From Trichoplax adhaerens (taxonomy: Eukaryota > Animalia > Placozoa): a stretch of DNA of 64,000 bases. Positions 13,252 through 42,690 of this stretch are shown piece by piece (the first letter of the stretch is position 1; each line of letters opens with the position of its first letter). The DNA lies in NCBI RefSeq assembly GCF_000150275.1, contig NW_002060944.1, positions 1,660,911-1,724,910 on the forward strand, in the 5' to 3' direction. A program made the translations under genes and the position numbers. Under the pieces are notes generated by a model. It was not told where the DNA came from. It did no database searches and saw nothing but the letters and a program-made list of their open reading frames with translations.

Positions 13252-14962
13252 TTAGAAAATATTATTATTTATAATCTTTCTCAAGGCCTCCATTTCCGAT
13301 AGTTTAAAATTATTGCCACCATTTTCCTTGAGCTTTCGTCGGTATTCGACATAATGATTATAAACAGTATCAACAGACTGCATTAGCAGTTGTGAACTAT
13401 GCAGTTTCATGAAATGACCCGGAGAGGGTCTACCATTGTTAAGGCCTCTCTCCCACAGCATTGCCCTTAAATCTACGTCCATCTACAAATTTCGCATGAA
13501 GAGAAAAGTTTAGGATTACATTATATGTTATTCATACAGAAAATACCACATAAACGTAATGAAATATAATATTAACATAGCTAACCTGTACACTTGACTT
13601 AATTGCATTTGTACAAACAGTTGGTTTATCGAATACTTTCGGAGATGATATGGCACTTTGAACATTGGAAAAGACATTAGTAGCGTACACGGCTGATGAG
13701 GTCTTTACCGATGACTGAAAAAATGTTTCAGTGACAGGTATACACTTATCCCTTGTAACATCAATTCTAGCAAATTTACTGCTGTCTTCGAAATGCAATC
13801 CCCAAGCATCTACTACCAAGCTACCACCTAGAGTTCTATTTCCGTTATAAGATGAGTTTTCTACAAAATTTGGAAAGAAAAAATCAGTAATCCACATTAT
13901 GCAGTTCAGAGATCGATCAAAAATTGGATAAACATCTAATCTAGAATTTTACGCATGTGCATGATATGGTAACAACTAGAAATTGCAAAGCGTCAAAAAT
14001 TTTTCCCCAACTATAATTCATCGTTTACTACTATTTGTATCCGTCATATACTATACGTGTATATCATCCGTAGCATGTGCAATCAGATAGATATCATTAG
14101 TATTATTTAAGCACACATTATTTTGTTGTGCAGTATCAATTTTATTCTGATATACTCGTATTTTAGACACAATTTACTGTATCCAGCGATTAAAACTTTT
14201 AAGTAGTCTTAGCCGTAGCTAAAAACTTACTTGGAACGCAGAAATCAGCAAATTTTCCTTTCAAAACGCTCATAGTACAATTGGTACCATATATATAATA
14301 GCTTATATTCTGAAATCAGTAATAAATTCCTAGTATTTTAGTATAACACCACAATTCAACATTATATTGTACGTGTTCTAACGTACTGTAGATTGCATAA
14401 CTGAAAAATTTGCGTACAGTATCCAAGCGTTATTAAGTTAATACAAGTAGTAGCAAAGAGCAACTAATTTATCTCGTAATTTTATTATTACGTAATTATA
14501 TAATACGTGATTAGCTCCTGCAGTTTTAATCTGTCACTAACGTAAGGAAGGCATACTGATAGATTGCTAAACTCACATTAACTACCAGTAAAATACGTGT
14601 CGTACATCAAAATTCAGTATACTTATTATTTTACACATAGTAATACGAGAATAATGGGATACAAAATCATTATACTGTACTCGTACCTTCCCCAAATCAT
14701 GTATCGTCGTTATGTTGACAGGATTCAAACTGTTTTCTTCATCGATCCTAACTCTCTTATTAATGGAGTCGTAATAAACAGATATCTTACCAGTCAAAAG
14801 ACTAACACCCAATCCCTTTTTTTGAGAAATGGAACTACCATCTTGTATTACAGTAGCCTGCCACTGCTTCGGTGTGCAGCAGGCATTTGGATTTGAGGCA
14901 TAACAAACCATACAGCAGCTTATAATCTGCAACGTCACCAAAACATGTAAACTAGTCGCCAT
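13252..14962 (-). CDS. Ependymin-related secreted protein E1
   Basis: Exons 14962-14687, 14309-14231, 13860-13586, 13482-13252. Signal peptide; CCTPKQWQ, YYDSINKRVR, C..FCVP, TLGG, CIPVTE, VFDKPTVC; 76-aa tail in exon 4. Confidence 0.88.
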
Positions 14963-15182
14963 ATTTTCAATACGTTTTCGACTTTTATGCTGTACTACAC
15001 TTTCTCCGTGATCGAATATGTAGTACTGTACCATACAGCAGGATCGACTTTACTCAGTTACCTCTAAACACGTAAACACTACTCTTTGGGCAGAGCAAAG
15101 TGCAGGTCACATGAGTTGGGAATGACGCTCTACTCATCGGTCATTACTGTAAAGCAGTACTTTTTACCGTGATCATGGACGA

Positions 15183-15770
15183 TAGTACAGTACAGTACAA
15201 TACTGTACAGAACAGTGTCAGTCACAGCCATAGAGGTAACGTAAGTTCTTACTGGTCACAGCTAGAAACCGACAAGGCAGTTGATGACTACGCGGTGTTA
15301 ACTAAGTGACGTCATAATCAAAAAATAGTCATGCGTATTATGAATTAACTAATTTCCCTGCATGACCAATTGACCATAGACATAGACTAAGTACAGTACA
15401 TTGTACTGTACATCTAGACTGGAAATTGCACAGGCGGACAGACTTTTGCATACGGTAGTGTACAATACTGTACAGTACAATGTACAATTGTACATACGCG
15501 GCCGAAATCTCCAAAAATCAGTTACTTAGTATAGATCTTCAGTATCTATTTTTCTCTATCATTTCTACTAATTCAAAACTTTATGGCCTTATATAGCTGC
15601 TTTCGAGCAGAACTTAGTAAAATAGAATGGATTTCAATGTAATATTATTTGCAAAATCGAGCATCCGCTTGATAACATTATGGGAAATGCCCGGCCGTCT
15701 AACTGTACAGTACTGTACAGTACAGTACAGTACATTGCGTACAAGTGTACAGTACACTGTACTATACACT
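15183..15770. repeat. TACAG/CTGTA arrays in the divergent E1/E2 intergenic region
   Basis: Clusters at about 15183-15215, 15390-15490 and 15700-15770 between the head-to-head ATGs at 14962 and 15913. Confidence 0.75.
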
Positions 15771-15912
15771 GATTATATTTCTTAATTAATTAATTAATTA
15801 TTATACTGTATAATTACTAATTATAGTCACTGCTCCAGTCTGCTGTAGTCTATCCTTTTAGTTCTTGGTGATTAGCGATACCGATTAACGCATTTTTCTC
15901 AAAGGTTCTGTC

Positions 15913-17505
15913 ATGAGAAGTCTTCTCCTTATTGTAGCCCTTTCCATTTATGGAGCGACAGCTCAAATTTGCTGCAGTCCTCCGCAGTTTCAAACAGTAA
16001 TCACAACCGATGATTATGTTGAAACTTCAAACACTAAGATTATGTCTCAAATTCAAATTCGGTTATATTACGACTACTCGAATCAGCGAATTCGAGTTGA
16101 TGAAAGTCCTGCTGGTATCAAAACTACAGTCATTATAGACTTCAACACGGTTAGTAATTCATATATAGTAAATAAAAAATGTGTGTTTGACGTTTCTTAA
16201 CAAACCCATCGAACCTCATGAGCTAACAAATAAATTCAATAATTATAATTCAATTAGTCACAAGCTCTTCGAAGTTAATTAATCGGATCGCCTGAAAATA
16301 TTATAGTACTCGTAATTTAAAATGCTTACCGACCTGTCGAGTTCGTACTGTGAATCTGTGATGCTTTCTTCAGTCACTGCACTATTAATTTATCTCTTTA
16401 TCATGGCAATAACATCGCGCCAGTGACATTAGCGATGCTGACACAGAGTACCCACCTGCTAGCCAGTAGTTTGATTCCGAAGTACATAAAAATTATTAAT
16501 AGATTAATAGATGTTGTATAATTAATTAGTAGCTGTCATAACTGTACTGTGCGACATTCCTTTTAGCTTACTCTAATGTTTCAATCGATCGTCAGACGAA
16601 TAATTACTTTATAATGAAGATATTTTTGACAATTTTCGACTTTTAGCACAAAACCTACATCATCACTAATGGACAATGTTTAACAACTACTATTGAAGCT
16701 CCTTTCAATCCTACCTGCATCCCAGGTTTGTTATTCATATTCGTCGATCTTAATTTTCGGTATGCCAGCTGTACGATAACGTTAAAGCAGTATTTGGGTT
16801 ATTTATTTTAAATATTCGAATTTGATCCTACAATTTCTTTGACATTTTCTTCCTGTTAATTTAAAAATCTACAACAAGAGTCGATTGCTATAGTAATATA
16901 TATAATTAAAGTATTTTGCTATTTAACATCGATCTACCTATCATTGCTAGGTAACGCATTATATAGTGGCATCTTGCAATTAGGTGGTCCTGATGGCATT
17001 ATAGCAAAATCATATCATTTCTCTACCGCCGATAGTACGATACAAACGGATTATATTATTTCTGAGAATTGCATTCCAGTACTCGAAGTATCGAAGGTGT
17101 CGCTGACTAATCCTACTACTGAAACAACATTCGTTACTCTGACTTACGGTAACACAACTATTGGTATACAAGATCCAAGTGTCTTCGATATACCCGCTAT
17201 CTGTTCTCAACATGCTTCAATGAAACTACCTGTAAGCGAAAAGGCACTTATTTCATACGTTTACTGTAACGGATAATCCTAAATCCTATGAATACAATTT
17301 CGAATGAATTACAGTATTAATTATAATATAATTATAAACAATATAGTATTTGCATTTAGTGTGATAGATTAAATTTAAATTCTTAAGAAAACTAACTGGC
17401 CTTTATTAACAATGCAACGATTGCAATTAGGGTTTCGATTTCTCTAATCACCTCCGCAGAAAACGAAGAGCCTCTTTTTACAAAAGTCTTACCAGCAACC
17501 AGTAA
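15913..17505 (+). CDS. Ependymin-related secreted protein E2
   Basis: Exons 15913-16149, 16647-16725, 16951-17231, 17431-17505. Signal peptide; CCSPPQFQ, YYDYSNQRIR, CIPG, LGG, CIPVLE, IGIQDPSVFDIPAIC; tail GFDFSNHLRRKRRASFYKSLTSNQ. Confidence 0.9.
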
Positions 17506-18852
17506 AATAGACATAGTATATTTGTAAATTATATAAACTTTATATTTTTATTGCTGATATCATACGAATACGGTACTGATGTCCGCAAAAAAGTTGTAGG
17601 TGGTATAGTGCAGCGCTGTACAATACTCCTGTATTTTTGCATTTCACTTAACTGTCGTGCCGTAAGTATAGGCACCAGAAGTATATATCTCTACTATACT
17701 ACTAGTAGTTAATAACTAAAATATAAGCAAGACTGCTAGCTGCACCCGCGTCAGCACACACGCTTAGATCGGCGAACTGTACGCTGCAATCAACATCTGC
17801 TGTATCTATTTTTAATTAAAAGAAAGCAGTTAATTTTCACGTTTGGTTTATCGTATAAAATTCCTAGAATTACGTCCGATTGTCCTTTTAATGGCTTAGT
17901 GTAGTGACTGTGGCTCAGCTTCTATTATGATCATGCGGTGCTGCGACTGTAACTGATAATGCGTAATGCAAAAATATATGTTATCACTGCGACGTTAGTA
18001 GTGCAATAATCCTTTCCTTCCTATAATTACATAGAATTGTAACGCTTATTTCTTTACGTGAAATAAAATCTTCTAAGTACATTAATATAATGACTGCACA
18101 TACTTGTATACTGGATATTTTATAAATCTAGTGAGTATCTTAGGATTAGTCTTGTTATCTACTATCTATTATCCGCCTGCTTTCTATCATCGCAATGATT
18201 ACAGTTGTACTACAGTGAGATACTATCAAACAGCTTTAAGCCTTTATAGTGTAACTATAGTGGACAGTACTTCTAGCAGCAGGAGACACTTCCCTGCGCG
18301 AAATGAGTAGTAGTACAGTGTGGATTGTCTCGATAGTATCAGCACTTTATATTGTCATAATAATACCAATACAGTATCAAGAAAAATCTGATACTTGACA
18401 CCTCTACCTGGGAACTGGCACATGATTAATTGACTTATAAGCGACATTACTGACCATTATTATTGTTATTATCACTAATAAATATTGCAAATAGAGGTTT
18501 TTGATCTTTTACTCATCTGAGTTCTCTCTTATATTCATATCAATTAGTGTTCCTCATATATCCAACATCTATACAATCTCATCTTTAATTGCTCGGAAAG
18601 CAATAAGTTAAGAGTGTCAGTTTCTGTTTGATCTTGAGTCTTGGAGAGCACTGTTGATGATCATAAATCATTTTGTTTATTTATTTATTTGCGGCCTGAT
18701 TCTTCAGCGTTCGGTCTCAGTCAATTTATCATCTATACCGCTGAAGCCCTATTGATAAAAAGAGATTTTTTTTACCTCTATGGCTGAAACCTTAGCATCT
18801 TAGTAGTTTAACAGTGAATATTATAAAGAGACACATCGCCATCGACACGTCG

Positions 18853-19188
18853 ATGGGCTCTGGTTCAGTTCAACTTTTAGCTGAAACTGCTTTCTGTTAA
18901 CCGGAAATATAGTACTTTACCATGGATGCTTACGGTACAGTACAGTGTTATGATTATGCTTTTACGCAGGCACGAGACCTATGCGAGATCTCTTCATAAG
19001 CCTAATAAGCATAATCTATTCATGGGCCCTCGTTCAGTCCAACCTTTAGCTGGAACTGCTTTCTGTTAACCAGAAATACTGTACTGTACCCATAGATGCT
19101 CACAGTGTTCTGATAAAACTTTAAAGTTAAAACTTTCACGCAGGCACGAGACCTACTGTATGCGCGATGATGAGATCTATTCATAAGC
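18853..19188 (+). repeat. Imperfect tandem duplication, two units with about 170 bp period
   Basis: atgggc..gttcagt.caac.tttagctg.aactgctttctgttaacc.gaaata...acgcaggcacgagaccta...gagatct.ttcataagc occurs at about 18853-19001 and 19022-19188. Confidence 0.9.
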
Positions 19189-19239
19189 GCGGTCCGTACT
19201 AATTCAACCAGTCAGTTACTCAACTTACTCATATTGTAA

Positions 19240-19487
19240 AGTACAGTACTACAGTATTAAAATACGAACAATACAGTACAGTACAATAAAAAGTCACGCT
19301 GAGGTCACATTTTCGGCAACCTAGCAACCTTTTTAGCAACTAGTTCAAATCCATAGTACTGTACTGTACTGTACCGTACATGTACTGTATATCAATCAAG
19401 TAATCGTATAAAAATTACAGTACTGTACAGTACAATACAGGAAAGCCCATCGAGAAAATACTGTACTGTACCAACTTGTACTGTAGT
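19240..19487. repeat. TACAG/CTGTA array upstream of E3
   Basis: Dense tacagtacagtac / tactgtactgtactgtac runs ending about 160 bp before the E3 ATG. Confidence 0.8.
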
Positions 19488-19643
19488 GCACTCATTGCTA
19501 TTGCCACTGAATACTGATAAAGTGCACACTAAAAAAGTTACGCAATTACTTTACGCACTAGCTGCACTCCAACTCAGAGGTTCCGCTGCAAACATCGATT
19601 CTAAAAATTTGATTAACGACAGAATATTTACGTTTGAGAAACT

Positions 19644-22025
19644 ATGCTACCATCGCTACCATCAATCGCTATTATCTTAGCTATTACAGCTGCAACTCAT
19701 GCCTTTCCAATATGTAAAATTCCGATGGAAATCCAAGGCACGATACAAACATTGAACGTTATGCAAGCGAATAAAGATGCAAAGCCCAACTTATCTGCTC
19801 AATCGTACAAATTTACACAAGATTTTAAGTCGAAAAGAATTCGTTTAGATGGTCAAGTAAATGGAATAAATACAACAATCATTGAAGACTTCGTTGAGGT
19901 ATTCAGACAGATTTATCATAATAACATATAAGAAATTATAGCAAGTATGATAATATATATAATTAATTTATACTTGCTTCTGAGATACGAGGTAATAGCG
20001 AACCGTAGTCCCGCAGTCATATGCATAGTTGCATACTATATATATATTATATACTGTATATACTGTATATCACATTTACACAGCAGCTTCACGAATGAAG
20101 TTCTTATCAAGTTGAAATATTAATAGAAATACAGTATTTGATAAATTCTTTAGAATTGGCCAAAAGAGTGAATACAGATCAATGTATAGCAACATTTTCG
20201 GAGCCGTACTGTACAGACAAAATAAATCAATGTAAATAGTATTTTACGTATACAGTGTAATACAGGCATATATTACATTGGGCACGATCGAAATTGGAGT
20301 TTTTAATTAATAGACAATGATCATTGCTATAAATTTTTAATTTTTAATTATTTTATTCAGTTTAAGCAGTATAGTCTATAGAACGATGGCCAATTCTACT
20401 GATCTTTATTTCAGCTATCATACCAAATTAACACACTTTAGAAGATGTAACATTATGATCTTATATAGAAGATGCCTAGTATAGTAATATCCTAATATAC
20501 GAATACTTATCATATACCGTTTAAGTACTGTATTGTATTACATTCATAATGTACGACATCATGACTACATATAGACGACATGCTATACATATAAAGACAT
20601 TATCTCAATCCCATCTAAAACCTATAAATACCCTTGTACGCTAACTCGTTAGTCAGTTCCTACATTCCTGCTATCTCAAATACCTTATCTATAACAACCA
20701 TATCATTGTTAGCCTGTAACTTGTATCTCAATAAAATCCTTTATACCTTCTATCATCGTCTACCTTAAAATACTTTACGCTACTTAAAGAAGATATCATT
20801 ACAGAAGATACGCTATAAACAAATTCCGACAGTCACGCTTTTTAATATAGTACCGAATAGACATTATGCTATTTTATGTTAACTAATGCGATAATCAATT
20901 TATATTGTAACAAAAAAGCACAAGATCTATACAATCATTAACAATGGAAAGAAATGCGTCACTGGTAATTTAACAATTTCGTTTCCGGATGCCAAGGCTT
21001 TAAGTAAGAGTTGATAATTATACAAGATGCGTATTCAAGATTTGAGCTAGTTTATCATTCAAAATGACCGCTGACTGCGGCGATACATGTGGCTTATGGA
21101 ACGTATACTTTATAGCAATAAAGAAATTTAAAATTTGAGACCATTACTGTTCTAAGCGTAGCGAGCGGACCCAGCTCCTAGTAGAGCCTTAAAACTAAAA
21201 CATTTTTAGCTCCAAAAATTTATTATTTTACCCTTAATACTCAAAAAAAATGGAATTTTATCATTAATTACAGGGTTACTAGATACTATTAAATTCATAC
21301 AAGCCGTCATCTCGCATACAGCGTAAGGTGATTTCAATGCTATATAATATTTTTTCTTTTATTATATAACTTCAGAAAATGCCACCTACCTTGGAATGCA
21401 CACTGTTGGAGGTTCATTAGCTGTATACATATATCGGTTCTCATTGGCTAATATATCAGCAACTGTTGAAGTAGCAAAGAAAACCTGTTTGCCTGTCGTT
21501 GAAGCAGCAGAAATTAAATTTGGTAAATTGGTTCTTCATTCAGCAATATCATTCTTAGATATGAAACCGAAGATCAGCAATCCAAATATTTTAAAGATTC
21601 CTTCCATTTGTTCTCAACACGCGACAAGAACCGAAAATGTAAATAAGCTATCGTAACGACATATCACAAAATACATATATACCAATGCAAATATATTATG
21701 TTTACGTCCAGTAATTGATTGAGTTTATCTCAGTAATATTTTTAATATACGTATGAATTACTATAAAATGTAAATTTAAGTCAATTCCTTAGTTATAATT
21801 TAGAAGAAAACAGTTAACTCAGTTTAATTTTGGTTAGTCAACTCATGCTGTTATTGCTGTAATAATGCGGTTACAAATATAACGATACTGAATTATATTT
21901 TAAGGAGGTTTCTTGGATGTTAATTTTCTCGTTTTCTGCTGACATCGCAATTATAGATGATTGACCACCTTCATTACGTGAGATTGCAAGCGGCTACTCC
22001 AGTGCATAAGCCAGAATCCTCTTAG
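19644..22025 (+). CDS. Ependymin-related secreted protein E3 (4-Cys type)
   Basis: Exons 19644-19898, 20919-21003, 21376-21638, 21957-22025. Signal peptide; CKIP, QDFKSKRIR, KCVTG, TVGG, CLPVVE, ILKIPSIC; tail MIDHLHYVRLQAATPVHKPESS. Confidence 0.82.
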
Positions 22026-23714
22026 CTTATGAACTATACCTTGGACTATTAGAGATTTAGTTCTAAAAGTAGTTTAAGTAAACATAAAATTCTGGGTATT
22101 CACCATCATCCTCGTACAAGGTTAATTCTTACAAGATGTCTAGGTTCGCGTGTGGATTCCCTACATTTTTAACTAGTCCATGGCTCGCGCCGTGATGATC
22201 ATTACTTATACTGAATAATTACTGCAACTGCGAAGAAAGCTAGAAGTAACTATGCATTTTACCATATAGAAGTGTAATGCAAAATTTTGCAACATTATAG
22301 CAAATACATAAAGCTATCATGCATTTTGGATTGATATTATGTTACCGAAGTAAAATGTAATAAAAGTATGCAGCAGTTTGCACATGCTACATTGGCTCAG
22401 TAGAATACTTTGATTTATGTTTTGAGATATATGACACCATCAACTGTTCCTATTCTGCTTATCACCACTCTTTGTCTTTAAACGATGTTGATATAATGAC
22501 TATCGACAATAATTAATATAAAGGTATTCAAGGTTTTAAAATGTCTTACTGCTTTATGCAACATTTTCAAGATTTCGATTCTTGATTACTATTTTATAGG
22601 GTTATGTCAGCAGCTGCAGCTTTAATCCTTTAGCCCGCTAAGCTTCAGGATTCTCACAATAGCGGATTTTACTGACGCTTAGCTTTTATTGTAAAGGTTA
22701 AAATTCTATAAGAAGAACCATAGTAAAGCATTTGACCGGTGATTTGCTAAAATCATAAAGCCGTTAGCTCAAATGGTCTCTAATTACATACAAGAGTTAG
22801 TCTAGCGACCTTCTGTTCATTACACGTTAAATCTAACGGTCTTAATAAATGCGTGCAATGCATGACCATCGCGATTGATAAGTAACTAATCATACTACTA
22901 TGCGCGTACATTACAATATTGCACCAGTACATGTTATATGTTATACTGTGCTAGCATGCTGATACAAATCGATACCTTTTACAATTCTAGTCGAAGCACC
23001 ACTTGTGTGATTGCATATTTTATAATAAGGAGATCAGGATAAAACTAAAGTTAAAGTTATATGAATTTAAACTTTGATAAAAAACCAAATCTCTTCATAG
23101 AGATCCACATTAGGTCGTGCCACTTCTCATAGTTGAAAATCAAACCCTGAGCGCGTGTCAAATATCAATAAAATGAAAAACTAATAATGTACGTAGTTAA
23201 GTTGATGTTTAATAGATATATAAGATAACAAAGGCGATTGATATTCAAGGATCTAAAGATAGAGAGCATTCTGTGAAATACCTTAAAATTAATCTCATTT
23301 TGCCTAATGTAATTCTACTCCAGATAGCTCATTCATCGGTTAAACTAAGGATCACCAGATACTTTGTATAAAGTATTTAGCAGCCCATAATTAATACTCA
23401 AATTGAAACCTTCATCTCAAACTAGATTGCGGCATATTAATTGGATTTATTGAGTTTGTGTACGGTATTTAACAGTCAATTGATATTACAAATTTGAGCA
23501 AATATCAGGATTATCAGTCGAATCATTATACTTGAGTAAATTATTAAAAATGTACTAGTTGCTCGAATTTAGGTAATAGAGCATTGCTGACTAATAATAC
23601 CCTTTCGGACAGTAGCCTAACACTCATGTAACATATAGATTTAGTTATAATTTTATAGAGGATACAATAAGTACAATACTAGTAACTTATTCTTGTACTA
23701 TCTATAAAACACTA

Positions 23715-24762
23715 TTAATCTTCAGAATTTATGATATCACGTTGGTAATTTTGACTTGCTTTAAGGGCTCCTAAACCTTCAAGTAGAAATGAAGCACATA
23801 TGTAATTTCCCATAATGCGGTAACAGCGAAAGAAAGAGTCGCAACATTTTAGTCCATCACTGCAATCAGCATTGCTTTCATGACAAGTAATCTGTGAATA
23901 GAAAATCACAAATGTTCAAAGTTAATTAAATCAGGTGCAAAAAATGTTTATCGGCAGAGATTTAAAAATAGATACTGTATTTTATTATAATGGTAATATC
24001 GGTAATACGCGAAGGCAAAATCATATCATTCACCGTTTTACGTAATTATATTCAGCATCTAAAGCATCACCGCTGTTATTTTTGCGCAAAATATCTAAGC
24101 TATCCAATAATATTATCTTGCTATTTATTTCAAATTCTGAAACCCCTTATATGTTTAATATGTTACCTAACAACCTTCATTATGTCGACTAATTTTATTA
24201 TAACTTAATTATTAAGAGTAGGAACATAACAAAAATTCCTGAAGCGTAATGTATCCATAATACAGTTGATTTAAAAGAATAGTCAATGTAAATCTTTAGC
24301 GAAAGTGCTTTATTGATATTCAGTTTAATAAGAAACGATAGCGTAAGAAGAATAGACAATGCTTAAGATTAACATATCAGCGTGCTTCGGGAATTGATTC
24401 CAGGAGGACTCTCTTAGGTAAAATATATGTAAGTAATAAATGCTTACTATAGGACGACTGATAAAATATTTCTATGCAGTAAATTCCTTTTTTCATAGTA
24501 ATGCAAGCATGATAAATGGTAAACTTACGGTCTTATTATTTCCAGAATGATCAGCATCGTTAGCAAGAGTTGTTTCCTCCGTCTCCTCCTCTTTGTTGTT
24601 TGGGGCGCCCTGCGATTGTTCTTTGACTGGCTGATCTTCTCGTTGCCGAAATGGATTGAATGAAAACCTAATATCACTTATGTCAATAATTCTTCGACAT
24701 TGGATTTGAATCATACTGGCAAATATTAAAGTAAATATTAAAATTTTCGTATCGACCTTCAT
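23715..24762 (-). CDS. Small secreted precursor with inhibitor-cystine-knot-like (C-C-CC-C-C) domain
   Basis: Exons 24762-24529 and 23891-23715 join in phase 0 (NNKT|ITCH). Hydrophobic signal MKVDTKILIFTLIFASMIQIQC, acidic spacer KEEETEETT, then CHESNADCSDGLKCCDSFFRCYRIMGNYIC and a 26-aa extension. Confidence 0.75.
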
Positions 24763-25737
24763 CTTTTCTCGTAACTCCTGAAAACATAGTTAGAGCCAAT
24801 ATTTAGTATGTCACAGTATACTAGATTGCATTGCCCATATATAATCATTTAACATCAGCGGCCTTGATTATATATATTATCTTACGTATGTTATTTTTTA
24901 TATTCCTAAATTTGTAAGCTTCATATGTGATTACTTATAAAAATTCACTATAAATGCATTTTATGCTTATTTTATGTCCCAGTTGCAGTTATTAGCGAAG
25001 CCAAATTGTCCTCATTTTACCTTTACAATAGTTTATATGTCGATACACTGTAATACTGTATCTTTCTATCCCCATGATACTGAATTCTAAGGAAATAATC
25101 TCAATTTTTTAATTTTATGGGAATAGTAATAGTGGCAATGGACTTGCAATCTATTCGTACTTCGAATTAACCATCATACTTAGTAAATCATCACCCTCAG
25201 AAATGGCAAAAGTCTCTGAAGCGGCAAAATTTCTGTTACATCGAATGCACACTTTTGTTGCATACGCAAATGATTTCTTGTATTAGTTAAGTAAACTAAG
25301 ATATGTTCTATTGATTTATGACTATATGACTATAATAGCCTTTAATCTTCTTATTTAAAGGCTATAGACGATATATCCGTATATACGGATGCATTATAAA
25401 TGAAGGAGCAAATGGTATAAATTTATAAATACCACTCAGGGAAATTTAGGCGACAAGTGCTATTCTATTCTATCAGCTTAATGTCGCGGAAACAGCAAAT
25501 AGTTTTAATAATTATATCAACATAACTAAACCAACATAATATTATGCAATTAATTTATTCTATGTACTACGGTGTAATAGTAATTAGATTACATAAATTA
25601 ATATAATACCACGTAAGAAAGATAAAACAGTGAAATTATGTGGCACTAGCAAATAGTTACACGAAGAGTTACATAAATATTCTATTTCGAAAGATTCTCT
25701 ATCATAGCTTGTTATAAAAAAATGAAGTATTTCTTAC

Positions 25738-25850
25738 CCTAAAGCCTATGAATCAATACTGTTTCGTAAAATCGAACAGTTAAGAGGAGCCACAAAGGTT
25801 GTTGCTTTGTAAGTATTCATCAAAATTATCTGTTAAAGGGGTATATATAG
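25738..25850 (-). promoter_or_regulatory. Probable TATA box and non-coding first exon of the knottin-like gene
   Basis: Minus-strand CTATATATAC at 25841-25850, a donor GG|GTAAGAA near 25737, and an acceptor TTTTCAG near 24778 just before the ATG. Confidence 0.45.
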
Positions 25851-28800: not shown

Positions 28801-29096
28801 TCTCCGATTCGTCCGTCTCTCCTTCCTTTCCCTACGGACAAAGTTTTATAAGTTTTAGTAAAGGTGTTATTATTATTTATCATGTACAGTTTATTAATGA
28901 CGGTGAGAAGTCGGAAGACAGTAAACATACAGTCATGGTACACATTCGATGTACACTGTATAGTGTACAGTATGAATAAAATGATGTCATCATTCGTCCA
29001 ATAACTAGTGCAGTGAAAGCTCATCTGCAGTACAACCTGTACATGAAAGTTAATGAGAGACACTAGAGGAATCCATTGGAAAAACTCTCGTTCAAC

Positions 29097-30787
29097 ATGA
29101 AGACTCGTGTACAATTCATCTTTTTGACCTTGTTGGTTTTCTTGGAGATATCAAGCGCATGTACACACCCTAAGCAACTACAGGGTATTTTAGCAGATGC
29201 AATAGCGACTAAAAAAATGCAACCAGGCGCCAAATTAGACTTACTAGAACTTGGAATCCGTTATTATTACGACTCTGTACTGCAGAAGATTCGTCTTGAC
29301 GAAAATATCGATGGAACCCGAATTACAGTTATTCAAGATTATAAACGGGTACAACATCCAAATACACGTATTTTGTGCAATAGCTGCTCGAAATTATAAC
29401 GTATACGTACGTATAATACGGATATACATTTGGCTCAATTTTCCGACGATTTCGTCAGAAAAGTGTTCGTGTGCCAAGCTGATTGGCTGGTAGTGAACGT
29501 CGTTCTTATCAATGTTGTCAATTTCTTTCTCACACTCTGTAAGAAATTTGTAAATCGGCGAGCGCTTAGGGAAGACAGGATCATTATAAATCAGTATGAG
29601 ACCGCATCGATTGATTAAATAGATCTTACGTGATTACAGTACTTAGGGAATCGTATTAATATTGATCGCTTTTATTTGACAATGCGCGTGCAATAGTAAC
29701 TGTTTCAAGTCGAGAAATCAGAAAAGTTACAGGTGCATCATGCAGTCTTATGAAAAAGTAAATCTATACCCGTATACCTGATTGATATTTTTTGATTTTA
29801 TCCTTATTACGAGATGTATTTCCCTTTCCCAGTTTGAGTGCTGATTGATCTCACCGTCAATCCAATCGAATTAACCTAATTATTAGTCTTTGGTACATAC
29901 CTGTAGTAATAAGTTAACGAATCTGTACCGTGTTCGTACACATTAATTGTAAGTATACTAGTCTTTTACTCCGTTGCGTTGCCGACGGATCGGACTCATA
30001 ACGTTAGCTTGGATCAAATCCAATAGATGGACTAACGATTTTTAAATTATGCATCATATACAAATGGGCTTTAATTGATAAGCAATTCAACTATTCTCTC
30101 CTTTAACTCTTGTTTTTAGCACAAGTCTTACACTATCATCAATGGTGATAAATGTACAAGCTCTAACTTAACACAACGCTTTCCAGATTACCCACCACGT
30201 AAGTATTTGGCTGTGTGAACATTTAGCATCATTCATTTTCTAATCTTATTCTATTGTGATCAGTACTAAATAACTTTACCAAGTGGGACTTAAAATTCTG
30301 GTTTAAGCATTTAAGCGTCATTTATTGGCTTAACTCATTGTTATATTATTTCAAAAATCTAGAAGATATAAAATCACTCGGAACTTTTGAATTTGGAGGA
30401 TCAAGGAATAAAATTCAAGTCGATGGCTATTCATTCATTTTTCAGGGCACATCTGTTCAACTTTTCTTTAACTCAAAGAATTGTATTCCAGTAGCTGAAA
30501 CTGCATATATTCAAATGCCGAATCAATTGTCTTTATCAGCTATTGCATTTTCCAATATGACCGCAAGTATCACAGATCCTTCCGTATTTAACCTACCTCC
30601 CGTATGTTCCGAATTCGCCACAACGACTCTTGAGGTTAGTAATAACAACAACAGAAGTGTATGTTAACCTTGATAAAAGCACTAGCTGTATGCCTCTAAA
30701 ATCGGTTTGCTCTTTTTTTTACAGAGGTTCGATCCTATCCACCATGCTAGGTTAAGATTTGCTGAAAGACATGTACGCTTACACTAA
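29097..30787 (+). CDS. Ependymin-related secreted protein E4 (4-Cys type)
   Basis: Exons 29097-29348, 30120-30198, 30363-30634, 30725-30787. Signal peptide; CTHPKQLQG, YYYDSVLQKIR, KCTSS, FGG, CIPVAE, ITDPSVFNLPPVC; His/Arg-rich tail RFDPIHHARLRFAERHVRLH. Confidence 0.88.
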
Positions 30788-33714: not shown

Positions 33715-35823
33715 ATGCGTTATATCCTTGTTTTGGCAACATTAATCACCATGGCTCTAGGCTGTTGCCTGCCAGAAAGATTTCTAGTTAACATTGATAC
33801 TTATAACCCACGCATTCGTAGTAATCTTAATCTTACAAGTCATTCAATGATATATGCTTATGATTCCATTAATAACAAGATAATGGTGAAGTATTCAGAG
33901 AGCAAGAAAATCATTTATGATTATCTAAATGTATGTTTTCTAATGACTAGCGATATGTAATGATTGTAAATTATGTAACAGTTACTCTAGTTTACTTAAT
34001 TCATCATAAATTCAACTGGGGTGCTTGGTAGTCCATTAGTGCAAGTATCTTATAGCTTTAAACTAAACCCATACTCATGGATCACTAATTACTCTGAAAA
34101 TTTAGTAATTCATATTCCTACGCACGTATTAAGCAGAATCGTATTAACATTACGCCACTACAGAGATCATAATAATTCCAGTCGATAACTTCTTATGTTA
34201 GTCATTCAAATCGACAGTATATCACTGTAATAAAATTTAAATCCAAAGAAAATATCAGTGGATATTAATAGCTTTTACTACAATTTATTGGAAGTCTATT
34301 GTTAACGAATTATTATATATACATCTGGCAAAACATCATCAGCCATCTTACAAGTTTCTATAGCTTCCTATTACATTTTTCATATACTTTAGTCGGCAAT
34401 ACTATTGCAATTATCATGATAGATATGATATCTCTACTAGTATAGGTCTCTATTAACTTCAATAACTATTTAAATCAGTTAATCTGCTAACGTTACAATC
34501 ACTAAGACTATTCAGGAATACTGCTTTAAAGTTTTGCTCTATTTTGGAAATAGGGTTTCCTGTATAATCAAGTCAATGCCACACACTGCATCAGTTCCAG
34601 GATATCCACCAGGAATTTACAGAAAATCTGCCTATCTATACGTAAGAGCAAGATAAAGTGTTTTCAACCTTAGAATTAGATTATCTACCAGAAATCTCCC
34701 TTACAGTAATGGATAATATACAATAGACAAGCTAATATTTTTTATTTTTTCGTATTTACTGCTCTTCAATATGAATATATACTGAACTCAACTTAAAAAT
34801 TTCCAATATGAGAAGCTTAGCCATTTTTCACACATCCATATTTCTCTCACCTTTTTTATATATCAAAAATAAATATATATATATTCAATATTCATAAGCT
34901 TCAGTGAGTGTGTACGAATAACATCTCAAATAGCAATTAGCACTGTCTAGTACCGTATCTTTTCATCTTCACTACTTTAAATAAGATGAAAAATTATAAC
35001 TGTATCTCAAAAATCTATTACAAAATAATATCAACTCAATTAGAAATAATCAACCGATAGAGGTGTAATTGCAACACATACTTCTACTTTGTAGTAAACA
35101 ATAGTGCGATGGGCCACTACAATCTCGGTGCCGGTAAACTGCCTTTCACGGCGTACGGAAAACGAACTGTTTCTGCCAATGTGGCCCGCGGATGGATATA
35201 TACAATATCGGAAGGCTGTTTGCCATTGACTACAACATCTTACTCAAATGATGTCAAACGCGGATACGCCTCTACAGCTGTATGGACTAACATGAAATTG
35301 CAATTTAATAGCTCTGTCTTATTCCGTCCATCTCAATCTTGTCAATCAACCGCAAGTTCTACGCGTCACATTAATGTAAGTCATTTATTTTATTATTGGC
35401 CACTAGTATATGCTGATATTTGCGATCTGTTAGCGAACTGCTTAAAGGGTTCGTTAATCTGTGAAATATTATACCGGCTTTTGGAGAAAATATAACAGCA
35501 TACAGTAGCTACTATCGATTATTCATTAATGTACAATTGTTTCCTAGGAATTTGATTTGATGAAAGACATTCACAGTAAATCTAGTCAACCGTTAGATGA
35601 GAAAAAAACTAAATTTATAAGTAGAATAAATAAATTCATGGATAAAGTTGAGATGGAACGTCAGCAAGAAAACCTTCGTTATCTAGAAGAAATGAAGCAG
35701 CGCCAGGAAAAGTATCGTATGCAGCAGGAACTAGAGACATACGAACGTTTAGCAGAATCAGAACTCAGGGAAGAAGACGGTAACTATGAAGATGATGATG
35801 ATGAGGATTTGAATTGGGAATAA
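33715..35823 (+). CDS. Ependymin-related secreted protein E5 (cationic core, long acidic tail)
   Basis: Exons 33715-33930, 34554-34641, 35095-35375, 35548-35823. Signal peptide; CCLPERF, YAYDSINNK, GHYNLGAGKLPF, CLPL, LFRPSQSC; tail ends EEDGNYEDDDDEDLNWE. Confidence 0.82.
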
Positions 35824-37796
35824 ATTATATCAACGAAAATCTTTCCAAGCTACCGCGTCCCATTTTGCAGCATCTATATAAAATTAATGGTCATATAATC
35901 TACTTATCGCTAGTTAAACCTTGTCTAACTGATCCTTTCATCGTTGACAAGAAAACTGAATGGTCTATATAGTGATGATATCTTACACTTATATTTAACG
36001 TATCACTGCACCTATCGTAATTAATCTAGCTTTCTAATTCATTTCCCTTGAGATTATTAATTTACTTAGTATGTTAGCTCTGTAACAATAAGTTGTTTAA
36101 CTCATGATCAACACTTGAGTTATTACAACAATTCGATAGTTTCCATTTAATAATGAATCATTCAATAAAAAAGCAAGGTAGTCAACTCTTATCTCAAAGG
36201 CTAAATTTTTCGAATAAATTTATCGTGGCATAACTCGCTCTACGTAAAACACTTGTATTTCAGACACTAAAATTTGGTCTGATCAAGGCCATGAAATAAT
36301 AACACCATAACATCAATCAAATGTACTGTTCAATGACTTTTTACAGCCATTCTAACTACACTATAAATGTAAGGATAAAGTATGTAAAGTTAGCAAAAGT
36401 CATCACCAAAATTTATTTATTTTAACAATCTTCGACTCATTCTCAACGATGTAATATTATAACACGAAACTTTCTTATAATTAACTGAGAATATAGTATT
36501 GAATACAGTTCATTCAATAAAGGACTTGATCGATCTGACAATGACTAGTAAGCAATCATGTAATACTTCAATTAATATACTATAATTAGCGACGTTAGGA
36601 GCCTTATTTGCGATTAAATTTTGTACTATAAATTTTATCGTGAAATATCTATACAACATCAACAGTATGTGAATTATTTCCATTCACTCAGAAGTGAATT
36701 AAAAATACAATAGGGCAAGAGCGTAAAGTATTTCAGAAAAGGAGTTCTTATTACCGCCTCATTCAGTCATTGAACGAATCTAAGGTTATGAACTAAATAA
36801 TTACACTAAAGGAATAAATTAATTGTTATAAATGAGTTTAGAATCTCCGAAGAAGGTTCACCCTTCATGATAATGATGTCTTTAAGGGGCATTTAATAAT
36901 AGCTTGGTAAGAAGGCGGCTCGATTTGAGTTTGTTATATTAAGAAGTCTCTTCAATTATCGTCTTATATTATTGTTTTTCACTATTATTATTTTGTTTAA
37001 TCTTAAATTGACGATACACGTCATAACTATACGAAAATAATAGCAGGCGGTATGTTGTACTGACTTCTTTCGTAAAGCTAGTTAGATAATGGAATCTTCG
37101 TTTCGTAAACAATTAATAGAATATCAGTGGTTTAGCTATACGCTCACGTTCGTATGAATAGTTATTATAATTGACAATCACAACCTAAAGGCCATAAATC
37201 AATTAACTTAATTACCCCGGTGAGATTAATCTTAAAACGTTTCGCATAACACTTTTTAAGATTTAAAATTAAATAGTTCAAATTACAGTAACTGCAGTTG
37301 CTAATTTTATCGCCGTTTAATTAAGAGATCAATATTATTAATTCTTCATTGGTTTACTATATATAATTTATATGCCAGTCTAAAGTAGGATAAACATGTA
37401 TCTACATGAGCAATGAATTAGCCGGCATTACTTTATTGCGTAAAAATTTGTAAGAGTGGAGTCAGTAGCTCATACCCACCCTACCTGACGGCTCAGTAAG
37501 GTGCTAAAGACAATATCCTTCTTGTCAGAAAGATCTTCTTTTAGGCAGTTGAGATAATAATAATTATGAGCTAAAAGACAAAGCATTGACAAGCATTAAG
37601 GCAATCTAAAGGTCATTGAATGTGCACAGCATTAGATAGCATAGAAATAAAATGGGAATTTGACAATAAGATGATAGAGAATAGTTTACGAGTTATTCAC
37701 AAGATTGCCTTAAGCGGTTTATACGTCTATGTTAATTATTCATATCGGCAACTAAGACTCCACCCCTATTATCTCTACGGTTTTTTGTCAATCTAG

Positions 37797-37806
37797 CTAT
37801 ATAAAT
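37797..37806 (+). promoter_or_regulatory. TATA box of E6
   Basis: CTATATAAAT about 120 bp upstream of the ATG at 37922. Confidence 0.45.
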
Positions 37807-37921
37807 AACCTAAGCGCCCTAAATTAAGGCAATCAAATATTTCGCTATATCTCACTCAACGATTTAGCAGTTTTGAGAATTACTCTTAAGTCTTGTTGTT
37901 GTTACTGTATCAAAATACGCC

Positions 37922-38982
37922 ATGATTCGCTATATTTTTGTCGTTGCCATTTTTATCTCTCTAGCTTCATGTTGCTGCTATCCAAACCAATTTCATGCTT
38001 ATGTTGGTTACATGTCTAATTATAAATATGGCAATACTGCACAACACACATCATCAGCAATGCAAATATGGTACGACCACTGCAATAATCGAGCCAGATA
38101 TGATTATCCCAAATATAAACTCTCTTACATCTACAACTATCAAATGGTTAGATAACGGATAGAACCTACAAAATCATAACCACTGATAATATTGTATAGT
38201 GTATTGATTCAAGAGGCGATTCATATTTTCTAGGGAGAATACGTTTATATGCAAAACGGTACTTGCCGTGCTTACACATTACGTGGTAATCTGACCAAAT
38301 TGTGTACTCCAAGTAAGACATATTGTATCACCATTGCCTGTAAAAGTTGAATTATTATAACATGTGCCGTACATTCAAGTAATAAACTGATATTGCTGAT
38401 TTTAGAGCATAACTATTAATCTATTATCTTTTTATAATGAACTTCCTAATAGAGGGGTCACATTTGATCAATTTGGGTACCTACAACTTTGGAGCCGGAA
38501 AATTGCCTTTCCATGTCTCTGGCTACTTTAGAAATTATAAAACTGGCAGTTATGGATCAATATATTCTTATTCTACAGATTGTGTACCTCTAGCAAGTGG
38601 TGGATACTCCAAAAATAAAAGAGGTTATTCAGTCTGGGGAAGTTCTTGGGTAAATATGACGATTGGAATAAGTAATCTAGGTGTTTTTGATAAACCGAAG
38701 AATTGCAAAGGATTTACCCGAGGAATAGTTAACCAGGTTCATATATTCTCGATATTTCAACGTTATAATATCTGTCAGTTTAATTATAAATGTTATTGTA
38801 TACAATAATTTAGCCTACATTACCAACTATTCAATTAATATTATCTTACATTATACAAAATTATTGCATGACAGGAATTGGACTTGATGGATGTCATCAA
38901 CAGATCTTTCAAAAAGGATGTTAGTACAGAAAAGGGCGAAAAATTCTCCAATATCATCGAAAATGTTTTCAGTAATATTTAG
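37922..38982 (+). CDS. Ependymin-related secreted protein E6 (cationic, Tyr/Gly/Ser-rich)
   Basis: Exons 37922-38146, 38234-38312, 38453-38736, 38875-38982. Signal peptide; CCCYPNQF, WYDHCNNRAR, CTP, GTYNFGAGKLPF, CVPL, IGISNLGVFDKPKNC; tail ELDLMDVINRSFKK... Confidence 0.87.
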
Positions 38983-41238
38983 ATGTGACTATATATGTCT
39001 CTATTTGCCAGTCACTATGCGTATTATTCGATAAACGTTATGAAATTTTATAACTTTATCAGTTAATAGCATATGTTAAAAGCAGCGAGTATCTTTAGTA
39101 TTGATTCATCTACATAAATTTTTGGGCTAGATAGTAGATTTTAGGCCTGATTTCTCCTAATTAATAATCGTCTATTTCGTAACTTGCGCATTGAAATTCA
39201 TCTGCTGACTGTTATAACTACCACAGCATTTCAATATTTAAAATGTATCGTACATCCATGACATTCGCTAAATAAAAATTCTGTCGTTGTCAACTTGTTT
39301 AGCATTGATGATGTTGCGTTCAATCTCGCTATAAATCGTTTTAGCGAAAAAGTAAATCGTAAACTTCTCTAATTTATGAGAATTTTCAAATTAATTCAAT
39401 TCTAGATTACCTATTTACTTTATCACATCACAAAGTCATGCTGAAATAGTGCACGAGATGGACTAGTAGGACTAGTATGAAGATCTACAATCGATAGCTA
39501 CTCGGAAGTTCAATGCGAATATAAGACTTCATTTATTGGGTTATAAAATAAAGTAATACTTGTACAAAGATAAAGTAAAATCAGACTAAACCTTACATAG
39601 TTTAAGAATATAATTTATTTAAAGCTGCGCTCAAATAGTGAATTTTCATATTAATTTACTTCGTAATAACCTTATTTCTCTTATAGTCTAATCATGTATT
39701 AAATATTTCATTAAAATATCAATTTAGAATTTCATACTTTTTCGAATTCACAAATAATTATTGTATTATTATATGTACTGTCTTTATCCCAGTCATATCT
39801 ACACATCCTGAACGCAAAGTAATTAAATGAAGGAAGTAATCAGTCCCACCGGACATTGGATACCAAAAAATCAATAGACTAAGTGAATTGAAAGAAAGCT
39901 ATTATTTTATGTCTTTGTTTTGTGCTTGCCAACAGGTTTGCGTTAACAACTATATTTGCATAATGTCTATTCATTTATTTAATCTCGCATAGAAAAATAC
40001 TATCTCTACAATCTTAAATGAAGCTAGAATGAGTTTTCAGCTTAACGTTCCTACATTTCATCCATTACTAGTTGACAACTATTTTATTTTTTAGCGAAAA
40101 TGGCATAAAAATTGTGCTGTACACTACTACTCTACATTATAACTAAATTAATTTAGCTGACGTCAATCATTCTATGATATAATATCTGAATTCAATGTCT
40201 ACTATTAACAAAATATAACATCGATGTGCAAGTATAAATAAAAGTAGGGAAAAAGAAGCGTAAAATTCGTTATTGAATAGACTTCATACATCAATCAATA
40301 ACATGAGTATCCGTTATATTCCAGACTTGAAAAAGACTAGTTGAAAATTCACAGCTATTAATATGAATGACTACTCGACGAAATCAATTATTATTATTTC
40401 GTGAGTAATATTAACTATCATTCTGTGAACGTGATATTGTGTATTGTGATCTCATAGTTACTTCCTCTTGGCTACAAAATAAATTCTTTTATTATCCTAT
40501 TTCATTAATTATAATTATGACTTATAAAGCATCCACAATAGTTTTTATTTCAATTAATTTAATGGAAATAGAATATATTTTGCTAGTACAATTTTAGGTA
40601 GCAATTTCTGTTGATATGGAGAACATGACGTTCTATATTATATCTCTTTCTGTTTAAAACACTCTCTAGGAAGAATATCAATTGATTATCCATAAAATAG
40701 TGTAAGAGAATTCAGACAATTTGGAAATACAAACGAGCTTTTAGTCTCCACATAGTTAATATTTTATTACTAAGAGATAAATGTTTTTAAGATTTATTAA
40801 TAACTGTCATTTATTAATTGATGTCAATCAAGGCACTTTGACGGTAATCATCTGATTCTCCTCGGAGCAATAAATCATCACACACAATAACTTATTGTGG
40901 CGGTAGCGTACATTAAATTTTTCTGAATTCATTATCTTTAAGATCAGCTAATGCACTACTATTAAAAGCAAGCAATATCTATTCATGTCTAAATCATTTA
41001 AATAGTTCATTAAAAGTTATAATGCGTCAGTATTTTTTACATAAATGACGTATTAGCACAATTGATAGTGGTAACAGTAATTGTTAGTTAACGTACTAAA
41101 TGGTGCATTTAATACACCCAAGTCAATTATGATCATCCTTCAACAACCTGTAGTGAACAATAGATGATCTATTGCCAAGTAACGCCTTTACTAAACCCCG
41201 TCAACGTTGATGGTGAATAATAGAATCAATTTAAAAGA

Positions 41239-41246
41239 TATAAAAG
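41239..41246 (+). promoter_or_regulatory. TATA box of E7
   Basis: TATAAAAG about 100 bp upstream of the ATG at 41342. Confidence 0.5.
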
Positions 41247-41341
41247 CCTGATTTTCTAGAGACGAGCAGATTTTTCTTAATCGTTGTGTAATTTTGCTAT
41301 AGAACGTGATTTAACGTTAGAGATTTCTGGAAATCGCAAAC

Positions 41342-42690
41342 ATGATGATGCGTCAATTGCTTACTTTAACCGCACTTTTTGCTTTATCGTCGGCTTGTTG
41401 CCTTCCTAGGCAATACTCAGTTTTGCTTGCTAGTGGTACTTTTAATAAATATTCCTCATCGATATCGCAATACGGCGCAATTAATAAGGTTTATTATGAC
41501 CAGTGCAATCAAAGAATTCGATACAATAATCCAACAGCGGGATTTTCGTTTATCACTGATTATGGAAGCGTAAGTTTTAAAAACAGGAAATATGTTGTAT
41601 CTTCATAAAATTTCATACGATCTATTCCATATTAGAGTTGATAGAAACCAATTACGAATCGATTTAATTATTAAAAAAGAGATACAGTATCAATAAACTT
41701 CAGTTATACACAATAATAGACTATGTGGCCATTAAGATCTAAATTTCTGATTCATATTACTGATGGTAGAACGAATATCATTCTATCCGTAATGGCACAT
41801 GCACTACATTTAAATTAAGAGGCAGTCTGAAAAGGACTTGTACACCAAGTAAGTATTAAAGATATCCTTATAAAATTATTCTGTAATTTATATGATAAAG
41901 AATTGTATAGTATCATCCTTATAATATACTGGTTCTGTACATTCTTACGTAAGTAAGCCAATTTTAATATTAAATGAAGTAAAACCATTCTCAATTAATG
42001 CTACTTCGCTAGGCTCTTTTCACTACATGAAAACACTGAATTTTGGTGCCGGTGCCCTTCCTTTTGATATTTTATCTTACAAGAGATTTGGTTCTACATA
42101 TAGTTCTGGTGCTTCCTATTTCATATCGAATCCTGGTTGTATTCCTATTTCCTATTCTGGCTTTTACAAGAGCAAAACCCGTAGTTCACTCCACGGCGTA
42201 GTTTGGCTAAATTTCACTATTGGCATCTCTGATTTGAGCGTCTTCAACGCTCCTAAATTTTGTAGAAGTACAAGAACTTTAAAATCAATGGAGGTAATGG
42301 ATATTTTATTTTAATATATCTGTAAGCATTAATAAAATGATTCGTACCAATTCTACTGTACTATTTCAGGTAGTCATATAGCTATGCAGCAATTTAATAT
42401 TATTTGTAAATTGCTAGTTCCGATTAAGTATTAAGTATTAATATGATATTTGCTATATTATTCAGAACTTCGATATATGGGATTTCATTGCAAAAGATTT
42501 TGGCCAAGAAACTAAAAATCCAGAAGAAATGTTTAACACCATGCACAAAGAAACTGAACAGGAAGAACGCAAGCCTGAAAATAAAGTAGAAATCAAACCA
42601 GAACGGAACGATGACTTTGATGGTAAGAAATTCCTTCGCGAAAATTTTGGTTTGGGAGACTTCGATTTTGAGGATAGCGACGACGAATGA
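41342..42690 (+). CDS. Ependymin-related secreted protein E7 (cationic core, acidic tail)
   Basis: Exons 41342-41569, 41770-41848, 42013-42293, 42466-42690. Signal peptide; CCLPRQY, YYDQCNQRIR, CTP, NFGAGALPF, CIPI, IGISDLSVFNAPKFC; tail ends GDFDFEDSDDE. Confidence 0.88.

Follow-up and report, generated by a model that had tools for sequence, protein, structure and literature searches.

A tandem array of seven strongly diverged ependymin-related genes with a variable C-terminal tail exon in Trichoplax adhaerens

A 64,000-nucleotide stretch of the genome of the placozoan Trichoplax adhaerens (assembly GCF_000150275.1, contig NW_002060944.1, positions 1,660,911 to 1,724,910 of the forward strand; hereafter the window) carries seven neighbouring genes, here called g1 to g7, between positions 13252 and 42690. 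These genes very probably constitute a tandem array of ancient, strongly diverged paralogues encoding ependymin-related proteins (EPDRs), which belong to a placozoan-specific expansion of at least 14 loci and share an inherited, variable C-terminal tail. The array itself is largely known already, having been both annotated and published, and the variable tail exon is only a modest new descriptive point.

Structure of the array

Gene models were rebuilt from the DNA sequence of positions 13252-42690, where the listed open reading frames (ORFs) come in pairs at seven sites from 13.2 to 42.7 kb (Table 1). The window, which lies on a scaffold of 9.7 Mb, has about 32% G+C and is eukaryotic in character. 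The gene g1 is on the minus strand and stands head to head with g2, and g2 to g7 all lie on the plus strand. Each rebuilt model has four exons and no internal stop, with GT-AG boundaries at all 21 introns and intron phases of 0/1/0; exon 2 measures 79 nt in every gene except g3 (85 nt) and g5 (88 nt). G+C content is 30-46% in the array exons versus 22-36% in the array introns, and exon 3 identity between paralogues ranges from 16 to 38%. Every countable detail of the array given in an initial annotation made from the sequence alone (seven four-exon genes, 0/1/0 phases and a 79-nt exon 2 in five of seven) was reproduced by the rebuilt models, as was a separate phase-0 last exon adding 20-91 amino acids after the final cysteine.

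Family membership and fold

The exon 3 frames of all seven genes match the Pfam Ependymin profile PF00811, with E values from 7.8e-12 to 5.5e-3. Exon 3 alone scores above the gathering score of this profile (32.3 bits) in g1 (E = 1.1e-9, 38.9 bits) and g2 (E = 2.5e-8, 34.5 bits) and under it in g4 (E = 3.2e-7, 31.0 bits), g3 (E = 9.1e-5, 23.1 bits) and g5 (17.3 bits), while full-length g7 (E = 8.8e-23, 81.3 bits) and g6 (E = 1.7e-10, 41.6 bits) score well above it; the public proteins of g1 and g3 carry precomputed PF00811 matches. A profile built from the exon 3 peptides of all seven genes, run against 1.8 billion representative proteins, returned 266 matches at E <= 0.001, the top three of which are public Trichoplax proteins that map onto g6, g7 and g5. 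The same profile matched the solved structure of EPDR1 (6e7o) by sequence (E = 5e-10); a phmmer search of solved structures with g7 alone gave no match, so that only the profile succeeded here.

Each of the seven genes has four family cysteines, namely an N-terminal cysteine, one in exon 2, that of a C-[IVL]-P motif and the final cysteine. Their positions are those of two family-wide pairs (human C42/C172 and C113/C210), the bonds being predicted, and across 100 family members each of the four columns is either invariant or conserved to at least 90%. An extra cysteine pair occurs in g1, g2, g5, g6 and g7; g3 and g4 lack both the second cysteine of an N-terminal CC doublet and the last cysteine of exon 2, and this joint loss suggests that these two residues may bond with each other. 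Inspected by eye, each of the seven N-termini looks like a signal peptide: it opens with charged residues, continues with a hydrophobic stretch 10-14 residues long and has small residues ahead of the first cysteine.

Structures were predicted for two of the seven genes, g7 (with a 100-sequence family alignment) and the orthologue of g5 in Trichoplax sp. H2. In the AlphaFold model of g7, predicted local distance difference test (pLDDT) values are >90 in the core and ~50-68 in the tail. With this model, the top Foldseek matches were mouse, human and frog EPDR1 and the sponge protein EPD-BCP1 (E about 1e-9), followed by bacterial LolA and VioE; against the EPDR1 structures 6jla, 6e8n and 6jld, E values were 7.6e-10 to 8e-9 and template modelling (TM) scores 0.61-0.72 by target. 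Although g5 is the most diverged copy, its H2 orthologue folds equally well, matching sponge EPD-BCP1 (8i34) at E = 7e-9 and EPDR1 at ~1e-7. The initial annotation had placed the genes in the EPDR family on their cysteine motifs and had anticipated an EPDR1/LolA-like fold; PF00811 and the four cysteines in all seven genes bear out the first point, and the match of the exon 3 profile to solved EPDR1 and the AlphaFold/Foldseek results the second.

A two-copy prediction for the g5 orthologue reached a score of 0.56 (best control 0.01). Of 30 proteins whose solved structures are pairs of one chain, 21 attain this value, as do none of 23 solved as single chains. Across the dimer runs, contact agreement was at least 27% and the pLDDT of the partner at least 64. 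The predicted symmetric interface is formed by core strands 110-117, 140-146 and 165-170, with the tail outside it. A coiled-coil dimer formed through the g5 tail was considered and rejected, since the confident dimer contacts are all in the core.

The tail exon

Fragments orthologous to individual array genes, found in Logan and ENA assemblies, locate the end of the shared sequence precisely: in every fragment, similarity stops exactly at the end of exon 3, where a valine codon (GTx) follows and the sequence beyond is unrelated. On this sequence comparison, the donor of exon 3 is real, and its position is kept in the orthologous fragments. Beyond it, the tail exons that match public models all begin with a hydrophobic-Asp-hydrophobic element (MDVDL, RFDPI, EFDLM, ELDLM and NFDIW). 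The tail exons of g2 (GFDFS) and g3 (MIDHL) were chosen by this start motif only, each being the sole motif-bearing candidate within 450 nt of its donor. With a background frequency of 1.5% for the motif, the chance probability of such a candidate is ~0.09 for g2 and ~0.04 for g3, and because the pattern was defined after the fact, the motif is weak support for these two exons.

It is accordingly a serious possibility, though on balance a doubtful one, that at least one of the two motif-based exons is wrong and that splicing in fact goes to a different acceptor or takes in additional exons. The public g3 protein takes a different acceptor and a fifth exon in both T. adhaerens and Trichoplax sp. 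H2, the pyrimidine tracts at the chosen acceptors are weak, and the chance probabilities just given are those of the motif by itself. However, all publicly matched tail exons begin with the motif and only the chosen candidates do so in g2 and g3, and the public g2 model extends into sequence that is unconserved in the orthologous fragments.

The element is found well beyond the array. Intronless Trichoplax EPDRs carry it at the same distance from the last cysteine (DFDYL, GLDPL), a looser form of the pattern occurs in 22 of 100 family representatives, and similar elements are present in cnidarian and annelid sequences in the McDougall 2018 supplement (PMC6280359). Many EPDRs also extend past the last cysteine: the median number of residues after the last cysteine is 25 among 100 EPDR proteins, and human EPDR1 has 14 (C210 of 224). 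With 30-34 such residues, the tails of g2, g3 and g4 are therefore ordinary; judged by the sequence models, those of g1, g5 and g7 (85-102 residues) are unusually long and that of g6 (45 residues) moderately so. Pfam gave no match to the array tails, and look-ups of the g1 and g5 tails in a protein atlas returned no match or generic long helices only. For the tails of g7 and g5, word-based protein searches yielded no candidates, a result that is uninformative given the length limits and word requirement of these searches. In the models, the g5 tail forms a confident 59-residue helix with an acidic end and the g7 tail short helices of low confidence.

The initial annotation went further and proposed that the tails are interchangeable functional modules, which tune secreted lipid-binding effectors for external digestion, defence or signalling. 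The range of tail lengths (20-91 amino acids) and net charges (-13 to +5), the confident helix predicted for g5, and the open frames of all copies with orthologues elsewhere are in keeping with such modules, but we consider this reading unlikely because no exon exchange is seen: all candidate tails share one start motif, and in intronless paralogues a homologous tail runs on from the core without a break. Nor do the tails have Pfam or atlas relatives, and the g7 tail is modelled at a pLDDT of only about 50-68. As far as the sequences go, the array bears no sign of tail exchange between genes, and the claim of modularity is not supported, given a tail start that is a conserved family motif, paralogues in which the tail is contiguous with the core and three tails of ordinary length. 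No result of the analysis links the locus with a role in digestion, in defence or in signalling.

An alternative that concerns g5, g7 and, weakly, g6 is that the acidic tail is a removable pro-piece that neutralises a cationic, membrane-active core and is released by proteolysis near a T-R-x-I/L site before the tail. Core and tail carry opposite charges of nearly equal size in g5 and g7 (Table 1), g7 has R-S-T-R directly past its last cysteine, and T-R-x-[IL] is common to g5, g6 and g7. We nevertheless regard this as very improbable, because the charges cancel in two genes only, and not in g1, g3, g4 and g6, and the tail lies outside the confident contacts of the dimer model; we also know of no EPDR with membrane activity, which counts against it. 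Were it true, g5 and g7 would be latent membrane-active effectors that could, for example, lyse algal prey or microbes, a role that would be new for EPDRs. The interpretation that we favour remains that of an array with an inherited tail of varying length.

Age and spread of the expansion

When the whole genome was searched with Pfam in six frames, twelve matches were obtained, five of which fall in the window, and the addition of g5 and g6 brings the number of EPDR loci to at least 14. Among the Logan and ENA fragments are one-to-one counterparts of g2, g3, g4, g5 and g7, which are 51-80% identical to them and 30-44% identical to the next-best paralogue, and one more fragment matches g6 (tblastn, 61% over 61 amino acids). 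Since these fragments are one-to-one orthologues, the duplications predate the split from their sources, which are presumably other placozoans; the great age proposed for the expansion in the initial annotation is thereby upheld. In a quick maximum-likelihood tree, the placozoan EPDRs all lie to one side of a branch whose Shimodaira-Hasegawa-like approximate likelihood ratio test (SH-aLRT) value is 92, g5 joins g6 and g7, and g1 joins the intronless copies.

One gene outside the array retains much of its structure. Tadh_52118, on another scaffold, is an eighth gene with introns 1 and 2 and a 79-nt exon 2; it stops inside exon 3, 14 residues past the last cysteine, and the tail exon is absent.

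Several points weigh against the interpretation of the locus as seven EPDR genes with an inherited tail. At E <= 0.1, Pfam gives no match to the g5 orthologue in full length, and for this reason g5 is assigned to the family by its fold, its gene structure and its place in the array. Both AlphaFold models were built on alignments of EPDR relatives, and the dimer score of the g5 orthologue may reflect the model's memory, because EPDR1 dimers have already been solved; that prediction may thus speak for likeness and not for binding. The tail motif was defined after the sequences had been seen, and its Asp is replaced by Asn in g5 of Trichoplax sp. H2. Support in the EPDR tree is modest throughout, and g7 is the only array gene labelled 'expressed protein' in the public annotation.

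Two side observations concern EPDR-like sequence in and beyond the window. Intronless EPDR loci, in which signal peptide, core and tail occupy one frame, lie 3.5 Mb away on the array scaffold and on a small contig. Two of them (L001 and L002) encode the same protein ~200 kb apart and adjoin assembly gaps, and the 14-kb contig C1303 holds three intronless copies; the L001/L002 and C1303 copies may be recent duplicates or assembly redundancy. Inside the window, a tblastn search for further EPDR copies gave only a weak, relic-like match between g3 and g4 (E = 0.14; Table 1), and no additional copy was accepted. The matching peptide resembles the end of g4 exon 1 fused to exon 2 (QDY..HYT..KCTS.SNL), with two in-frame stops and no intron between the exon-1-like and exon-2-like parts, and its score exceeded those of 2000 of 2000 shuffles, a comparison without correction for the search of the whole window. 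On its sequence it may be a decayed intronless EPDR relic.

Public annotation and prior knowledge

The concern raised in the initial annotation, that automated annotation could miss the array, turned out to be misplaced. JGI/NCBI models exist for each of the seven. The McDougall 2018 supplement (PMC6280359) catalogues ten T. adhaerens EPDRs, of which six belong to the array (53030, 53031, 53032, 53034, 53036 and 63614), and Wei 2019 (PMC6363788) reported 13 Trichoplax EPDR genes of a 'Basal-1' clade and termed them a rapid expansion. Given these models and the published catalogue, the worry is unfounded, though two public models are truncated. The rebuilt g1, g6 and g7 are identical letter for letter to public proteins, g4 equals Tadh_53034 of the same supplement, and g5 is one residue off a 286-amino-acid protein of Trichoplax sp. 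H2; the H2 counterparts of the array proteins include one named 'Ependymin-related protein 1'. The public T. adhaerens g5 model is a 180-amino-acid partial that is contained in the rebuilt gene. The public g2 (Tadh_53031), as given in that supplement, begins at an internal methionine and reads past the exon 3 donor, and the public g3 (234 amino acids) is the same as the rebuilt g3 for residues 1-201 and then diverges to the alternative acceptor and the fifth exon, in a form that occurs on contigs of T. adhaerens and Trichoplax sp. H2 alike. A literature search by locus tags and by Trichoplax together with EPDR found no expression study.

What is added here is therefore small, namely a corrected four-exon g2 model, an alternative g3 tail, a tail splice donor that is kept in orthologous fragments, a tail-start motif common to most other Trichoplax EPDRs, the intronless ones among them, and to some EPDRs of other animals, and the joint cysteine loss in g3 and g4, and it leaves the view of the EPDR family unchanged. 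EPDR function is poorly understood and the placozoan expansion is among the larger ones outside bilaterians; the array would be of interest only if expression or biochemistry tied given copies or tails to a function.

Other features in the window

The 7-kb gap of the array contains, on the minus strand, a two-part candidate gene for a small, cysteine-rich, secreted-looking protein: the first of its ORFs listed in Table 1 looks like a signal peptide with an acidic pro-region and the second is cysteine-rich, and neither ORF has a Pfam match. Further along the window, a single-exon ORF encodes a rhodopsin-family G-protein-coupled receptor (PF00001, E = 9.2e-17).

Table 1. Coordinates of the array genes and of other features, with total protein length, contribution of the tail exon and net charge of core and tail; positions are those of the window unless a contig is named.
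Feature	Public names and proteins	Strand	Span	Exons or parts	Protein length	Tail exon	Net charge, core / tail
g1	TRIADDRAFT_53030; P0155	-	13252..14962	14962-14687, 14309-14231, 13860-13586, 13482-13252	286 aa	76 aa	+6 / +3
g2	TRIADDRAFT_53031	+	15913..17505	15913-16149, 16647-16725, 16951-17231, candidate tail 17431-17505	223 aa	24 aa	-7 / +5
g3	TRIADDRAFT_53032	+	19644..22633	19644-19898, 20919-21003, 21376-21638, then tail (a) or (b)			+9 / 0
g3 candidate tail (a), with motif		+		21957-22025, begins MIDHL	223 aa	22 aa	
g3 tail (b), public five-exon form	Tadh_53032; P0156	+		22053-22121 and a last exon of 10 codons ending ~22633	234 aa		
g4	TRIADDRAFT_53034	+	29097..30787	29097-29348, 30120-30198, 30363-30634, 30725-30787	221 aa	20 aa	0 / +3
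g5	TRIADDRAFT_53035; XP_002109224; P0003 (partial); P0152 (Trichoplax sp. H2)	+	33715..35823	33715-33930, 34554-34641, 35095-35375, 35548-35823	286 aa	91 aa	+12 / -12
g6	TRIADDRAFT_53036; XP_002109225; P0001	+	37922..38982	37922-38146, 38234-38312, 38453-38736, 38875-38982	231 aa	35 aa	+14 / -2
g7	TRIADDRAFT_63614 'expressed protein'; XP_002109226; P0002	+	41342..42690	41342-41569, 41770-41848, 42013-42293, 42466-42690	270 aa	74 aa	+14 / -13
Possible EPDR relic		+	23467-23580				
Candidate cysteine-rich gene		-	23715-24762	ORFs 24493-24762 and 23715-23909			
Rhodopsin-family receptor		+	52453-53442	single exon	329 aa		
Eighth intron-bearing EPDR (L004)	Tadh_52118		G000:C1414:7490500-7495500	1685-1942, 2052-2130, ~2764-3065		absent	
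Intronless EPDR loci (L001, L002, L003, L005)			G000:C1413, ~5.21, 5.32 and 5.42 Mb; C1303	one frame, 30-56 aa after last Cys			

A model of the encoded proteins

The analysis establishes the family, the fold, the gene structure, the age of the duplications and the existing annotation; ligand binding, secretion and the role of the tails are matters that we infer. Each gene would encode a putatively signal-peptide-bearing, disulfide-bonded protein with an EPDR1/LolA-like half-barrel, and by analogy with solved EPDR1 and sponge EPD-BCP1 a hydrophobic ligand may be held in its groove. The protein would probably be a homodimer that works extracellularly or within the secretory or endolysosomal pathway. 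The last exon is very probably not a foreign module; it opens with a short amphipathic hydrophobic-Asp-hydrophobic element, which is common in placozoan EPDRs, is present in some other non-vertebrate ones and matches the C-terminal rim loop (L12) of EPDR1 in position. The rest of the tail is weakly constrained and charged, is predicted to be helical or disordered, and has become long in g1, g5 and g7 and, less markedly, in g6.

Comparison with known systems

The EPDR expansions of Amphimedon, Branchiostoma and Acanthaster resemble the array in being lineage-specific tandem duplications of secreted, strongly diverged copies; unlike it, they arose independently in other phyla, and a dedicated variable last exon is not described for them in the accessible part of McDougall 2018. 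Within Trichoplax, the EPDRs Tadh_63667, 62545, 53531 and 52118 lie 3.5 Mb away on the array scaffold or on other scaffolds. The first three share with the array the hydrophobic-Asp-hydrophobic element, 10-13 residues past the last cysteine, but are intronless with contiguous tails, whereas Tadh_52118 shares introns 1 and 2 and the 79-nt exon 2 but not the tail exon.

Vertebrate EPDR1/MERP (6e7o, 6e8n, 6jla, 6jld and 6jl9) agrees with the array in the PF00811 domain, the LolA-like fold and the positions of the two family-wide cysteine pairs; its N-terminal signal sequence has a putative counterpart in the array, judged by eye, and its symmetric homodimer a tentatively predicted one in the g5 orthologue. 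It differs in sequence, identity being ~15-20%, and in its cysteines: the vertebrate-specific C88/C222 pair has no equivalent in the array, and five of the seven array genes have another extra pair. The C-terminal end also differs from that of human EPDR1, with 30-102 residues after the last cysteine in the array against 14, and with this end placed on a separate exon.

The sponge carotenoprotein EPD-BCP1 (8i34; PMC10470211) is likewise a non-bilaterian EPDR. Structurally it is the top match to the g5 orthologue (E = 7e-9, TM score 0.67-0.69 by target) and a close one to the g7 model (TM score 0.72). Identity to the array proteins is ~13-18%, and its 175-residue chain is without long tails; it binds astaxanthin and mytiloxanthin and thereby colours the sponge.

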